Below are positions 3,162 to 56,061 of a DNA stretch of 64,000 bases, in pieces. The notes beneath the pieces were generated by a model. It was not told the origin of the DNA, did no database searches, and saw nothing but the letters and a program-made list of their open reading frames with translations. Within the stretch, counting starts at the first letter, position 1. Each line of letters begins with the position of its first letter. The DNA lies in the NCBI RefSeq assembly GCF_001194135.2, contig NC_068994.1, forward strand, positions 34,600,874-34,664,873, written 5' to 3'. Source of the DNA: Octopus bimaculoides (taxonomy: Eukaryota). Position numbers and translations under genes: made by a program.

Positions 3162-3442
3162 TTATGCATATGGTAGTTTGGGTAGAGCTGGAAGTGGTTT
3201 GGCATAAGATGTGAAACTATTCCTCATCGGTAGGTTCCAAGGCTGTGATGGTATAGTGGAACCACTGCTACCTACTCGAATAGATTTTAGATCGATGATG
3301 TCGGTGCAAGGTGTGCCCTGCCCCACATTGGACTGGTAGATAAGTTTGGGGGTGGCACTAGGGTCTTTAAATCTACCGAGGGATTTTGATAAGGCTTTGC
3401 CATCTGTAGTTTGAACTGCCTTCGGTTGGTAGGATATGATAC
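3162..3442 (-). CDS. Pcdh: Protocadherin terminal coding exon 3 (281 nt incl. TAA; ends QPWNLPMRNSFTSYAKPLPALPKLPYA*)
   Basis: Strong acceptor TTCTCTTTTTTTTTTTCTTTTGTCCAG|GT in phase 1. Exons total 2400+133+281 = 2814 nt = 937 aa + stop. The QPWNLPMRNSF..KPLP motif is what I recall from octopus protocadherin C-termini. Confidence 0.85.
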
Positions 3443-6400
3443 CTGGACAAAAGAAAAAAAAAAAGAGAATTCTAATGAGGTACATTCATTTACAAATGAG
3501 GCCATTTTAGTGTGGTGCTGATAGAATTAGTTAAATGAGGTGTGCAGTGTAAGCATTTCTACCATGATACTGGCCCATGGGGCTTATTTTCCTCCCTGAG
3601 GAAGAATGGAACTCTGCAAACAATACGAACTAATGAAATAATCATTGATTAAGTACAGTGCAGTACCTAATTATGCAGAGCTCCACCTGCCTGTCTGTGG
3701 TGCATATTTAGAGCTAAGTGGACTGAGGTCAGGGTGGTTTAAGTGTCTTTGGCTATGGACAACAACAGCACATTGCATGTGACAAGATATGACCTATCAG
3801 CAATTGGTTCATTTATCCAAAACACTATCAACTCAGCCAGATGTGACACTTTATAAAATGAATGCAACAAAACATACATTGAGAAAGATTTAAAATAGAT
3901 GGAAAAAAAAAAAGACTTAAATAAACAAAAATAAATACATATATAAGCAAGTAAACAAACAATCGAATAAATACAATACAAATAAAATAACCAAAAGACA
4001 TCCTTTGAACAAAAGCTTTCACTGAATAATAAAAAGAGAAAAAGAAAACAGTAATTTATTTTTCTAATTTGGCAAGTTTTTACCTGTGGGTCTATATTTT
4101 CAAGATAAGTTACTGTGAACATAATTTAGGCACACCAAACTATTAAACACAAATATTGTGTTCCTATCCACACTGGTTTTCATTCAGTCTCTTCAGTGAC
4201 AATCTTCAGGCATTATTTTTCAAATACATACATACAAATATATATATATATATAGATATGAAGCATTTGAATTGTATCAACATAATGTAATAAAGGTGTT
4301 TCCCTGAAGAACTGTTCTGGACCTGCTGAGGATGCAAACAGCCACACTGGTGAAAATGTATAGGGAACAAATAGTATAGACTGCATCTTGTATTTATCAT
4401 ACATATCCATACATATGTATATATATAAAACCATAGTCAGTATTTGCAAGAAAGTGTGACTTGATTACATGTTCCACACTTTTGCTAATTACTCTTGGTA
4501 TCTATGTAACTTAAAGAAGACATAGACACTCTCTAAGCCTTTCTGCCACCATTGACTCAATGGTAGCAAGATGAAGAGAGGTCTGCACTACCAAGTCAGG
4601 TGGTACTCATTTTCAGCTGATAGGAAATAAATGCCTTGCCCACAGACACAGGTAAGACACAATGTGCTATCTGGTCCAAGACACAAACCTACAACCTCAT
4701 GATCCTGAGGTTGACATCCTATACCTTCACACACATGCATGTAGGCACACACATATATATGAGTATATGTAACTCTGTATCTGTGTGTGTGTGTGTGTGT
4801 GTGTGTGTGTGTGTNNNNNNNNNNNNNNNNNNNNNNNNNNNNNNNNNNNNNNNNNNNNNNNNNNNNNNNNNNNNNNNNNNNNNNNNNNNNNNNNNNNNNN
4901 NNNNNNNNNNNNNNNNNNNNNNNNNNNNNNNNNNNNNNNNNNNNNNNNNNNNNNNNNNNNNNNNNNNNNNNNNNNNNNNNNNNNNNNNNNNNNNNNNNNN
5001 NNNNNNNNNNNNNNNNNNNNNNNNNNNNNNNNNNNNNNNNNNNNNNNNNNNNNNNNNNNNNNNNNNNNNNNNNNNNNNNNNNNNNNNNNNNNNNNNNNNN
5101 NNNNNNNNNNNNNNNNNNNNNNNNNNNNNNNNNNNNNNNNNNNNNNNNNNNNNNNNNNNNNNNNNNNNNNNNNNNNNNNNNNNNNNNNNNNNNNNNNNNN
5201 NNNNNNNNNNNNNNNNNNNNNNNNNNNNNNNNNNNNNNNNNNNNNNNNNNNNNNNNNNNNNNNNNNNNNNNNNNNNNNNNNNNNNNNNNNNNNNNNNNNN
5301 NNNNNNNNNNNNNNNNNNNNNNNNNNNNNNNNNNNNNNNNNNNNNNNNNNNNNNNNNNNNNNNNNNNNNNNNNNNNNNNNNNNNNNNNNNNNNNNNNNNN
5401 NNNNNNNNNNNNNNNNNNNNNNNNNNNNNNNNNNNNNNNNNNNNNNNNNNNNNNNNNNNNNNNNNNNNNNNNNNNNNNNNNNNNNNNNNNNNNNNNNNNN
5501 NNNNNNNNNTATATATATATATATATATATATATATATATATATATTTATAATAATATGATATGTATATGTTGTTTTGTCAATGCATATGTGTGTACATA
5601 TATATATGCATTCTAATGTAAAAGCATATTTATATATTTCACAAAAGCTGATTGTGGTGTAGACTCTGGAATACATGTCTTATTATTAATTATTAGTAAA
5701 CACTGAAGAAGTGAATTAATATTATATAAGGTTTCAACAAACAATTATGTATTCTGGCAGTAATCTAACGAAACACGTGTATGCTTTCATAAAGCATTAA
5801 CTACCTTCTATGTTTTCTGATTTTATTAATACCATTATTACATGGCTCATACTCCACACACTAGCCTCTCCCATAGTTTGACACCTCACCTTGTACTGCA
5901 ATGGATATAGGAATGGAGTGCACAAACTACTACCAAGTCCAAACTTTGGTTTATGTATGTGTGCGTGCATGTGCATGCATAAGCATTGTTTGACTGCACT
6001 TGATCAACAAATGAAATTTGACCTGTCTGTGTGTCAGGCCTTAAGCAAGTGTTTAGTGGTAGAGTCAAAGTCATTGTTGTCATAAAAAGTACCTTGATAT
6101 GCAGAAATGTTGAATATCAGAGATCAGATCGTAAATATAGTGCGAAAGATTTTCTATATCTAATATATTGTATTATTACTATTATTATTATTATTACTAC
6201 AAAATAGTAATATAAGAGAATATAACAGTTTATGCACATTTTAGATCTGCAATGACTCTACCATGATGCATATATATATATGTGTGTGTGTGTATTTTAT
6301 TTTTATATATATATATATATATATATATATATATATATATACACACACATACATATACCTAAACTGAACTTGAAACTTCCATTTTTAATGCAGTGTTTTA

Positions 6401-53661: not shown

Positions 53662-56061
53662 ATAAGTTACTTGAGGTGTTCCTTGTACGGCTGCCTGAGG
53701 CTGTATTTCAACAGCAGACCCTTTCCAAGTATGGCCTGCTTGAAATTCGGCACAGGGTTCCTTTTTAAGCAATGTTGCTTGGTAGACCTGGTTGTGTTCT
53801 TGTTTAGTTACCATGGTAACTGGAATATCATATTGTTCACACACATTTTCTGATTGGTTTCTTTCATCTAGAAATTTGTTATCGGCCTCTGTGGTGCTTC
53901 CATATGGCACATTCTTTTGATTGTGCCTCTGGACAATACATATTATAACTGAAATTGCTGTTACTATGGTGATAATGACTGCTGCCACAACAAAGAGAAT
54001 CATCAAGTTGATATGTATTCTATTGTCTGTTTCCACATGCACTGTGGTTTGCATTTTGGCTGTTTTGTTGCTAACTGTTAATATTAAAGACAAGGTGGTT
54101 GTTGCAGATAGAACTGGAGTACCGCTGTCTTTAACAACAAACAGGAGCTCGTATGATCCAGCGTCGTTTTGGTAAACGGTACGAGAAAAAGATAAAACTC
54201 CTGTGTAGGAGTTCACTTTGAATAGCTGTTTCTCGTTTCCTCCAAGTATTTCGTACCTGAGGAAAGCATTGACATGGCTGTCTCTGTCAGAGGCTCTCAA
54301 TACTGCAACATCATTCTTGCGATGGGGTTGATAGTGGACATCTAAACTAAAAGGGTTAACACTAGGAAATGTAAAATAAGGAGCATTATCATTCTCATCC
54401 ATAACCTCAACAACAACATTTGCTGTGTTGTTTAGTGATGGTGTTCCATTGTCTTTGACGAAAACTTTGAATTTGTAAATATCTTGTTGTTCATAATCTA
54501 CAGACCGAGTTGTCGAAATGAAACCAAAATCAGAAATTTCAAATGGCAGTATGTGTTGGTCACTAATTAATGAGTAACTAAGTTGACCTCCTATACCTAA
54601 ATCAGGGTCAGTCGCGTTAATGAAACCAACAGGAAAGTTTGGCTCTTCGTTCTCATAAGTCAGAAACTTGAAAGTGTTTTTGGTGAAATGTGGCTTCACA
54701 TCATTCACGTCTGTTACTTGGATGGAGAAATTTCTATCTGTCCCAAGAGGAACAGACCCTTTATCCTGGCAGCTAATTCTAAAATCAAGATGATTTTCTG
54801 TCTCTCTATCAATCAGATTCTTTACAGTTATTTTATATTTTTTCTTTCCAAGGTTTTGAAGTTGTAACTTGTTGTGTTGAAGTTCACAAGTGACTTCTCC
54901 ATTTTCTCCAACGTCATTGTCAGTGACTTTCACGTAAGCTATAAAACTACCCACTTTAACTCCTTCTGATATAGTGAAGGCATTTTCTGTCGACTCAGAG
55001 AAAAAATTCACCTCCACACTTGGAGGATTGTTCAATTGGTTGATAACATTTACAAGAACAATAGCAGTGGAACTAAGAGGAGGGTTACCACCATCCATAG
55101 CTTCAATGAATAACTTATAGGTTTGCCTTTGTTCAAAGGGGAAATTGTCACGATAGAAAATTTCTCCTGTATTTTTAACTAACTCAAAGTAAGTTTTTGT
55201 TAATCCAGCCATCTTTGAACTGAAGTAATATGACACTTGACCATTTTCATCAGAATCGAAATCTTTTGCCAAGACAGTTACAATTGATAAATTTTTTGGA
55301 TGAGTATTCCTTAAAGAAACATTATATACACTTTCAGTAAAAATTGGAGGATTATCATTTTCATCTTTTACTAATATTTTAACATTTAAAACACCTTGTT
55401 TCTTAGGAAATCCTCCGTCTTTGGCTATAACTTGCAGTGTATAAGTATCTTTTGTTTCTCGGTCAAGTTTTTCAACTAAGACAATACCCAGTTTTGCCGT
55501 GCCATCTAGTTTTTCATAAACTGACAAATCAAATGGTTCATTTTTGCTTTTTTTCAATACATAAGTTATTAAAGAATTCTGAACTCCAAGATCTTTGTCT
55601 ATGGCATTTGGAATTGATAATCGTGACCCTTTCCTGTCTCTTTCTGAGAAATGGATTTCGACTTCATCCACCGTAAATTCTGGTGGGTGATCATTTACAT
55701 CTTCTATAACAACTTTTATTTCCAACACTTTGATAAAGGATTCCTGGTTTTTGACAGCAACTTCAATAGTCTTGAAACAGTCTGTATTATATTTACAAAG
55801 TGATTCAGCATCAAGAACTTGTGAAGTAAAAAGTTTACCAACTTTTGAAACTCGAAATAATTCGGATTTACTGTTCTTTGCTAATTGACTGAATGTTATC
55901 TGATCATGGTATTCTGGAGAGACCGTATCGAAAATGTGTGTATCAGCAGCAATATTCCCCACATAGGTGTCGGAGCTTTTCCCTTCATCCACTCGGTAAA
56001 TGAAATCCAAACACACACATGTGTCAATTAGAAATTGAAGTATGAGCAATTGTAACAACAT
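53662..56061 (-). CDS. Pcdh: Protocadherin coding exon 1: signal peptide, EC1-EC6, TM, proximal cytoplasmic tail (codons 1-800)
   Basis: Uninterrupted ORF with a hydrophobic N-terminus (MLLQLLILQFLIDTCVC). Six cadherin repeats carry DxNDxxPxF, DxDxG, LDRE/DYE and DxGxP motifs, and EC1 has the protocadherin C-x5-C motif (CKYNTDC). TM is ~aa 684-710. ATG context is GCAAC-ATG. A phase-0 donor TAT|GTAAGT has its intron starting at 53661. Confidence 0.97.

Follow-up and report, generated by a model that had tools for sequence, protein, structure and literature searches.

The 64-kb window (64,000 nt, the whole stretch of DNA analysed here) of Octopus bimaculoides contains an 820-aa open reading frame that encodes a protocadherin ectodomain, and the question raised by this locus is whether that ORF represents the complete product or only the first exon of a much longer gene. 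The preliminary description proposed the latter, joining the ectodomain exon to two small cytoplasmic exons spread over 53 kb. Our analysis indicates that the locus is, almost certainly, one ordinary and already annotated multi-exon protocadherin gene on the minus strand.

The features of the gene are listed in Table 1. Exon 1 codes for a signal-like N-terminus, six cadherin repeats, a transmembrane helix and the first ~90 cytoplasmic residues, and ends at a phase-0 donor, TAT/GTAAGT, with the G at 53661. Exon 2, 13.8 kb downstream, has a phase-0 acceptor and a phase-1 donor and encodes TAVNKEKRMVISPEQLNTISTLSSLEGSETSWSESGSRHYETLP(G); it is flanked by AG at 39850-39849 upstream, where the adjoining polypyrimidine tract is weak, and by GTATAT at 39715 downstream. 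Exon 3 is located 36.3 kb further on, its acceptor AG at 3444-3443 being preceded by a strong poly-T tract, and it supplies aa 845-937 of isoform X1 (GIISYQ...QPWNLPMRNSFTSYAKPLPALPKLPYA, then the stop). The two junctions match in phase (0/0 and 1/1) with GT/AG sites throughout, and the joined CDS of 2814 nt translates into 937 aa with zero internal stops, reading ..GTPQVTY/TAVNKEK.. and ..HYETLPG/IISYQ.. across the junctions and ending in ..KLPYA. The exon coordinates, splice sites and phases proposed earlier were all reproduced to the base.

Table 1. Features of the protocadherin gene, in window coordinates
Feature	Position	Strand	Description	Basis
Coding exon 1	53662..56061	minus	2400 nt, aa 1-800	ORF and sequence
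Transmembrane helix segment of exon 1	53932..54012	minus	aa 684-710, INLMILFVVAAVIITIVTAISVIICIV	hydropathy
Coding exon 2	39716..39848	minus	133 nt, aa 801-844 and first base of G845	
Cassette exon 2b	6487..6530	minus	44 nt, cag/GG TTT CAA ... CGA CAG/gtacgt; GFQRSYPLCCSPVRQ	
Last coding exon (exon 3)	3162..3442	minus	281 nt including TAA at 3164..3162	
Probable 3' UTR	2435..3161	minus	conserved non-coding, 3' of stop	inferred

The region beyond the stop codon is probably the 3' UTR, as suggested by its conservation: window positions 4259..2000 are 96.1% identical to O. vulgaris, compared with 85-93% for the introns, and Logan contigs of another octopus are colinear over 3902..2435. The Logan contigs found (L006-L009) match genomic DNA colinearly and unspliced. 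The predicted exon junctions, 53662/39848 and 39716/3442, are based on annotation, homology and conservation, and we hold the gene model as a whole with very high confidence.

Phase-compatible candidate exons are common by chance. Downstream of the first donor there are 2,778 open phase-0 AG..GT candidates of 60-400 nt, and phase matching on its own is no better than chance; the three-exon model stands above chance because homology, rather than phase matching, supports its exons. When 122 cephalopod protocadherin hits were compared with the window by tblastn, only three places were matched, corresponding to exon 1 (120 queries), exon 2 (14) and exon 3 (38), and the matches were colinear in each query. 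In approximately 36 full-length homologues the colinear match extends beyond exon 1 to exon 2, exon 3 or both. Among those matching colinearly into the tail exons is P0091, an O. vulgaris UniProt entry named "Protocadherin" which we take to be one of the Styfhals et al. transcriptome sequences.

Many octopod protocadherins have C-terminal tails homologous to the peptides of exons 2 and 3, so that the model passes the comparison with cephalopod proteins set as a check in the preliminary description. The shared motifs are ..STLSS..WSE..HYETLPG in exon 2 and ..DIIDLKS..QPWNLPMRNSFTSYAKPLPALPK.. in exon 3, with 34-48% identity to paralogues, and an exhaustive profile search located them at the C-terminus of octopod protocadherins of 890-960 aa; these motifs have no entry in Table S2 of PMC6339937. 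Exon 2 is unchanged in O. vulgaris and O. sinensis (100% identity), and in the proposed frame it differs from Argonauta by nine codon changes, eight synonymous and one non-synonymous. These comparisons show purifying selection on the tail exons. The same exon series is also kept in the orthologues of four species. The assignment of exons 2 and 3 to the protocadherin, made at the outset by phase and octopus protocadherin motifs, is now upheld by colinear homologues, conserved order and the public gene model.

That public model matches the joined 937-aa product residue for residue: it is XP_052829043.1 / UniProt A0A0L8FHF2, named putative protocadherin beta-18 isoform X1 of Octopus bimaculoides. 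Its annotated CDS spans 52,900 bp on CM046614.1 (GCA_001194135.2), equal to window positions 3162..56061, so that neither sequence nor CDS span differs from the assembled model, and the uninterrupted protein with a 227-aa tail is the one predicted by the preliminary description. That description also called the gene hidden, which is true of the ORF track but not of the public annotation, where the exact model is held. Similarly, its count of three coding exons is correct for isoform X1, but a 44-nt alternative exon at 6530..6487, exon 2b, which it did not include, is added to the three-exon model in RefSeq isoform X2 (XP_052829044.1 / A0A0L8FHG0). This gene and its two isoforms can be found in public records, and octopus protocadherins were already known to be multi-exonic.

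Several other readings of the tail exons were considered. One is that the 820-aa ORF, read through as a single exon, is the real product, with exons 2 and 3 being chance phase matches or parts of a separate small gene; the ORF is indeed open, candidate exons of compatible phase are abundant as described above, and other paralogues have "hypothetical protein" models of 128-217 aa that consist of the tail only. However, the ORF continues past a consensus GTAAGT donor with 20 residues (VSSFLLFNIFFFKTFILLFQ) of intron-like character, while the homologues that continue into the tail exons (P0091 included), the mostly synonymous changes in exon 2 and the exon series kept in four species all argue for splicing, making the read-through product very improbable. 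The 53-kb span could instead be a scaffolding artefact in which exons were brought together on wrongly joined contigs, a concern raised by the location of the four exons (counting exon 2b) on four separate contig pieces with 14 N runs between them. None of these N runs is inside or touching an exon, all being in introns. Against an artefact, one monotonic colinear chain relates window positions 56429 to 2000 to positions 9631 to 56796 of the gap-free O. vulgaris locus (L003), crossing every gap, and the O. sinensis and Argonauta hians loci, both free of N, show no change in exon order or orientation; the likelihood of misassembly is close to nil.

The layout of a large exon for ectodomain and transmembrane helix with small, distant tail exons also bears a superficial likeness to the variable/constant protocadherin clusters of vertebrates, in which case exons 2 and 3 would be shared constant exons. 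The O. vulgaris orthologue and a paralogue, P0006, share a chromosome, with ~0.5 Mb between them, and O. vulgaris accessions are close together, from which we infer that the surrounding O. vulgaris region is protocadherin-rich. Only one ectodomain exon is present in the 64-kb window and the flanks of L001, however, and the paralogues have tail exons of their own, 37-67% identical to the present ones; the P0006 locus of O. vulgaris, for instance, contains a separate exon 2 and exon 3. Octopus protocadherins are reported to arise by whole-gene duplication, and splicing of varied first exons onto common final exons is stated not to occur in cephalopods (PMC9068888). The single ectodomain exon and the separate paralogue tails largely refute the constant-exon arrangement, which we regard as highly unlikely. 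The three-exon gene with its own tail exons is retained as the model for isoform X1.

Analysis of the 937-aa protein by Pfam identified five Cadherin domains (E=1e-68) and a Cadherin_2 domain at residues 22-105. The top PDB match is protocadherin gamma-B4 EC1-6 (6e6b, E=1.4e-88), which aligns end to end over residues 22-662, and the PCDH10 EC1-6 ectodomain is also similar (E=1.8e-80). Ectodomain and transmembrane helix are encoded in one large exon, with aa 1-800 unbroken, and the tandem cadherin repeats agree with the six or seven of a protocadherin. Hydropathy peaks at 3.06 over 19 residues at 689-692, the sole other hydrophobic stretch being the N-terminal signal-like segment; on this hydropathy profile the product is predicted to be a single-pass type I membrane protein, with the 227-aa cytoplasmic tail following the helix at 684-710. 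The cadherin cytoplasmic-region (catenin-binding) family was not among the Pfam matches at E<=0.01, and the tail matched no PDB sequence and no Pfam family.

Octopus-specific ectodomain motifs have been listed previously (Table S2, PMC6339937): D[AT]ExxC in EC1, two motifs in EC5, and L[RK]..D..D.[HRG].N and QNDAG in EC6. All five are present, as DAESLC (84), VFVKDNGTPSL (533), MDENDNAPY (554), LRASDRDSHVN (588) and QNDAG (631). A PP1-type [RK][VI]xF motif, listed for some family members, was not matched anywhere in the protein; this pattern gave only 15 hits among 53 O. vulgaris sequences (PMC6339937) and is thus not family-defining.

Octopus protocadherins are multi-exonic, according to the part of PMC6339937 that cites Albertin 2015 for 168 multi-exonic PCDH genes. 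The present gene shares six EC repeats, a multi-exonic structure and the tail motifs with this expanded octopod family (Albertin 2015; Styfhals et al. 2019, PMC6339937; Albertin et al. 2022, PMC9068888), and its tail exons are likewise its own and unshared. It differs in being unusually conserved, with a 937-aa O. sinensis orthologue at 99% identity and an Argonauta hians model at 88% as against ~58% for the nearest paralogues, and in its cassette exon. The vertebrate clustered protocadherins (alpha/beta/gamma) are alike in their six-EC ectodomain and in the large exon that encodes ectodomain, transmembrane helix and proximal tail. In contrast to their many variable first exons and shared constant exons, the octopus gene has one ectodomain exon and no shared constant exons, and its tail has no detectable similarity to solved or Pfam-modelled vertebrate tails. 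In vertebrates, the non-clustered delta-protocadherin genes likewise begin with one large coding exon and continue with a few small ones for the tail, with alternative C-termini. The delta-protocadherin ectodomains (PCDH10/17/18/19; PDB 6vg4 and others) are similar to the present one, but a pattern search of the present tail found neither RVxF/PP1 (CM3-type) nor WIRS motifs; vertebrate CM motifs are reported to be absent from octopus PCDHs (PMC6339937).

When exon 2b is included, exon 3 is entered in phase 0 instead of phase 1. The product is the 910-aa isoform X2 (P0126), which departs from X1 after HYETLPG, reads the first 156 nt of exon 3 in the other frame to the TAA at 3289..3287, and lacks the family-wide C-terminal motif. 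It is conceivable that X2, with four coding exons, is the main product and that the 937-aa form is minor or restricted to certain tissues. Exon 2b has good splice sites and, together with its 3' flank, is 100% identical in three Octopus species compared with 93% for the surrounding intron; the Argonauta exon is also 44 nt with its splice sites kept, and gene models of Argonauta and O. vulgaris use it. Within exon 3 both the X1 and X2 frames are open with conserved stops in all four species compared while the third frame is closed, indicating that the X2 frame has been open since the Octopus/Argonauta split; when the X1 peptide is recoded synonymously, the 51 codons of the X2 frame stay free of stops in only 2.2% of cases. 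On the other hand, the X1 frame encodes a motif that at least 38 homologues share and ends at a conserved stop position, whereas the 2b peptide differs from Argonauta at 7 of 14 residues. Codon-position counts in the dual-coded part favour neither frame, at P0006, the single paralogue locus checked, a 2b-like exon is lacking and the alternative frame is closed, and the gene models using 2b elsewhere may be homology copies. Overall, we consider it unlikely, though not negligibly so, that X2 is the main product.

Exon 2b may act as a conserved, regulated frame-shifting switch that makes the terminal exon dual-coding and links recognition to two intracellular outputs, a proposal we offer tentatively as somewhat short of an even chance. 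The protein C-terminus carries an invariant KPLPxxP, a match to the SH3-ligand consensus of class I (+xxPxxP) that would recruit cytoplasmic partners. Skipping exon 2b would give the X1 frame and the family-wide C-terminus (..IIDLKS..QPWNLPMRNSFTSYAKPLPALPKLPYA), and including it would give the same ectodomain without the KPLPxxP docking site. No description of this frame-shifting mechanism was found in the literature searched, though both isoforms are annotated. By analogy to vertebrate protocadherins, the protein would be a neuronal cell-surface adhesion and recognition receptor.

The 53-kb gene model was recovered exactly from splice signals and known motifs, without tools, but its discovery value is small because the gene and its isoforms are already in public records. 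Separately, on the basis of tail homology, several of the tail-only octopod "hypothetical proteins" may represent other protocadherins' tail exons left unconnected to their ectodomain exon, an observation that may be useful to annotators. For the octopod family, exon 2b provides a handle for testing what the uncharacterised protocadherin tail does.

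An 820-aa minus-strand reading frame (53599..56061) is the sole genuine long ORF in the 64-kb window; the remaining long ORFs read through N runs or simple repeats. The preliminary description had proposed that most of this frame is the first of three coding exons of a protocadherin, and both its observation and its interpretation are correct. Donors, acceptors and frames lie where it placed them, its junction peptides match the joined product exactly, and 2400, 133 and 281 nt join into 937 codons plus a stop, without an internal stop. As it had estimated, the cytoplasmic tail is 227 aa, counted from a hydrophobic segment at residues 684-710. 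Its count of three coding exons holds for the 937-aa product (X1) but misses a 44-nt exon, exon 2b, of the annotated isoform X2.

Coding exons and splice sites of the protocadherin gene in window coordinates (a slash marks an exon boundary)
Feature	Position	Strand	Sequence	Remark
Exon 1 donor	donor G at 53661	-	..ACT TAT/GTAAGT	cuts the 820-aa ORF
Exon 2 acceptor	AG at 39850-39849	-	then ACT GCA GTT AAT.. (TAVNKEK..)	read from sequence
Exon 2	39848..39716; donor G at 39715	-	end ..CTC CCA G/GTATAT	133 nt; read from sequence
Exon 2b	6530..6487	-	..tttctaacgcag/GG..CAG/gtacgt; peptide FQRSYPLCCSPVRQ	44 nt; good splice sites
Exon 3 acceptor	AG at 3444-3443	-	after long T-rich tract, then GT ATC ATA TCC..	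read from sequence
Exon 3, X2 frame	3442-3287	-	VSYPTNRRQFKLQMAKPYQNPSVDLKTLVPPPNLSTSPMWGRAHLAPTSSI, then stop	stop at 3289..3287
Exon 3 stop	3164..3162	-	TAA	ends X1 frame; read from sequence

The joined protein is identical to XP_052829043.1 (P0003; UniRef100_A0A0L8FHF2), annotated as 'putative protocadherin beta-18 isoform X1 [Octopus bimaculoides]'. Its locus lies in GCA_001194135.2, record CM046614.1. The window matches part of this record exactly, in reverse orientation, and window 3162..56061 equals the 52,900 bp annotated as the range of the gene. The reconstruction is thus exactly the existing model, and since that model is already public its novelty is nil. Octopus protocadherins are described as multi-exonic genes in the passage of PMC6339937 that quotes Albertin et al. 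2015.

Phase matching by itself carries no weight: downstream of the first donor, 2,778 candidate exons (AG..GT, 60-400 nt) are open and can be entered in phase 0. The gene model is instead decided beyond chance by three independent lines: homology, selection and orthology. The joined product retrieved 122 proteins, and tblastn with all of them matched the 64-kb window nowhere but in exon 1 (120 queries), exon 2 (14) and exon 3 (38). These matches are consecutive within each query and their HSPs end at the proposed splice sites; for the O. vulgaris paralogue P0006, residues 11-787, 797-840 and 839-933 correspond to exons 1, 2 and 3. These colinear matches, together with alignment of the tail to paralogue tails, bear out the similarity of the exon 2 and 3 peptides to cephalopod protocadherins that the preliminary description had offered as a check. 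Nine codons of exon 2 are changed relative to Argonauta hians, eight synonymously and one non-synonymously, and neither the order nor the orientation of the exon series changes in O. vulgaris, O. sinensis or Argonauta. A word-index search with the tail only returned just two Logan genomic fragments and missed P0003; this index is insensitive to short queries, and its result was left out of the evidence in favor of the full-length search and an exhaustive profile search. Four Logan contigs (L006-L009, found via protein P0001) were considered as transcript evidence and rejected: they run colinearly through intron, exon 3 and the DNA beyond it (window 3902..2435, 91.5% identity), so they are genomic or unspliced, come from another octopus species, and support no junction.

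Other readings of the locus fare less well. A read-through 820-aa product would add 20 intron-like residues past a consensus donor and is unsupported. Tail exons shared as constant exons by several ectodomains are excluded, as there is a single ectodomain exon in the window and the paralogues, whose tails differ, are encoded at loci of their own. According to PMC9068888, the protocadherin family of cephalopods expanded by whole-gene duplication, and diverse first exons are not spliced to shared final ones. Exons 1, 2, 2b and 3 each lie on a contig piece of their own, and it is scaffolding that sets their order. The window contains 16 N runs, 14 of them within the gene span and all 14 intronic; no exon holds or adjoins one. 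By megablast, the gene span (window 57200..2000, minus strand) forms one monotonic chain with the gap-free O. vulgaris orthologue locus (window 56429 to 2000, locus 9631 to 56796) that spans every gap. A scaffold misjoin is excluded, since the gene is colinear with all three of the gap-free genomes compared, those of O. vulgaris, O. sinensis and Argonauta. Several gap lengths look overestimated (695 N against ~220 nt and 131 N against ~27 nt in O. vulgaris). All N runs in the window, among them 4815-5509, 20170-20300 and 45760-46661, have (TA)n or (CA)n microsatellites at their edges.

With the exons in this order, the introns between exons 1 and 2, 2 and 2b, and 2b and 3 measure 13.8, 33.2 and 3.0 kb in O. 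bimaculoides, 9.7, 30.5 and 2.6 kb in O. vulgaris, 8.2, 30.9 and 2.5 kb in O. sinensis, and ~0.6, ~9 and ~3 kb in Argonauta, all approximate lengths from alignment coordinates. The first intron is longer in O. bimaculoides because window 51048..43682 spans 7.4 kb against 1.55 kb in O. vulgaris, which gives this stretch the appearance of a lineage-specific insertion. Within the stretch are three N gaps and a 315-aa ORF (47964-48911, plus strand) with a YLDD-like motif, which resembles a decayed retroelement reverse transcriptase. Intron 2 contains a 189-aa ORF of a repeating unit (..LLCHHPNWQIVPIVSSSLSTCLCYVIILIGKLC.., 12613-13182, minus strand) that is probably a minisatellite and not a gene. 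A Pfam scan of these two ORFs and of a third intronic ORF, 41716-42252 (plus strand), gave no matches, and searches of the whole window with Rfam at gathering thresholds and a tRNA scan found nothing.

At the gene ends, window 2000-3161 (minus strand), downstream of the stop, is 96% identical to O. vulgaris, with introns at 85-93%, which points to a 3' UTR conserved over at least 0.7-1.1 kb. Upstream of the ATG, 368 nt (56062-56429, minus strand) fall within a 96%-conserved block. They include a strong site resembling an acceptor (ctctttttttcag/, near 56135) and, at 56101, an upstream ATG that is out of frame (minus strand). This arrangement suggests that there is a further, non-coding 5' exon, so far unseen, and possibly a uORF.

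Pfam assigns the protein five Cadherin domains and an N-terminal Cadherin_2, and found no cadherin cytoplasmic domain. The closest solved structures are full EC1-6 ectodomains, those of protocadherin gamma-B4 (6e6b, E=1.4e-88, residues 22-662) and PCDH10 (6vg4); the PDB search with the protein gave no match to the tail. The protein carries each of the five ectodomain motifs published as specific to octopus. The tail is 30-48% identical to paralogue and orthologue tails, with one conserved block in exon 2 (..SPDxFxExSTxSS..DSGxGWSE..HYETLPG) and another in exon 3 (..CNDVIDLKSxR..QPWNLPxRNSFTSYxKPLPAxPKxPY). P0091, a UniProt entry from O. vulgaris (A0A411DZ05, named 'Protocadherin'), has both blocks as well; we take it to be one of the sequences that Styfhals et al. 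mined from a transcriptome assembly (PMC6339937). If so, a protocadherin mRNA encodes such a tail together with the ectodomain.

Searched exhaustively with HMMER, 1.84 billion representatives yielded only 27 matches to a tail profile. All 10 of the named matches looked up are from Octopus or Argonauta, and these 10 are either 890-960-aa protocadherins matched at the C-terminus or short tail-only models. Nine 'hypothetical protein' models of 110-217 aa (P0127, P0128, P0130, P0131, P0133, P0140, P0144, P0146 and P0150), from other loci in O. vulgaris, O. sinensis, Argonauta and O. bimaculoides, carry protocadherin tail motifs only; they are likely tail exons of other paralogues left unjoined to their ectodomain exon in annotation. 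An invariant K-P-L-P-x-x-P (pattern match at 926-932) fits the class I SH3-ligand consensus; RVxF and WIRS patterns, also sought in the tail, are absent. From its family we infer that the protein may act as a homophilic neuronal recognition receptor whose tail would recruit cytoplasmic partners.

Isoform X2 (XP_052829044.1, A0A0L8FHG0; 910 aa, in the same 90% cluster as X1) departs from X1 directly after HYETLPG. As 44 is not a multiple of three, inclusion of exon 2b causes exon 3 to be entered in phase 0. The X2 stop lies in the last exon, so nonsense-mediated decay would not be expected. Three Octopus species share one sequence throughout exon 2b and 60 nt of its 3' flank (100% identity, with the surrounding intron at 93%). 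The Argonauta exon, also 44 nt, keeps both splice sites but differs at 10 of its 44 bases and 7 of its 14 residues. Two frames of exon 3 are open, with conserved stop positions, in all four species, and the third is closed; only 2.2% of synonymous recodings of the X1 peptide keep the second frame open for 51 codons. Divergence from Argonauta is 6.4% in the dual-coded 156 nt and 13.6% in the X1-only part. These comparisons are evidence that exon 2b is real and constrained. Codon-position counts against Argonauta over the 10 substitutions of the dual-coded part do not separate the frames.

The O. vulgaris orthologue model CAI9732387.1 (939 aa) takes in exon 2b and the first part of exon 3 before running into an unrelated C-terminus, and its gene range extends ~24 kb past the conserved exon 3; its terminal exon is probably mis-joined in annotation. 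The one paralogue locus examined (L002) lacks both a 2b-like exon and an open second frame, so the switch need not be family-wide. The literature searched yielded no discussion of a frame-shifting cassette or dual-coding mechanism. Both isoforms are already annotated, and exon 2b is a conserved frame-shifting cassette exon that would make the terminal exon dual-coding, which is the only, and mildly, interesting remainder of this locus.
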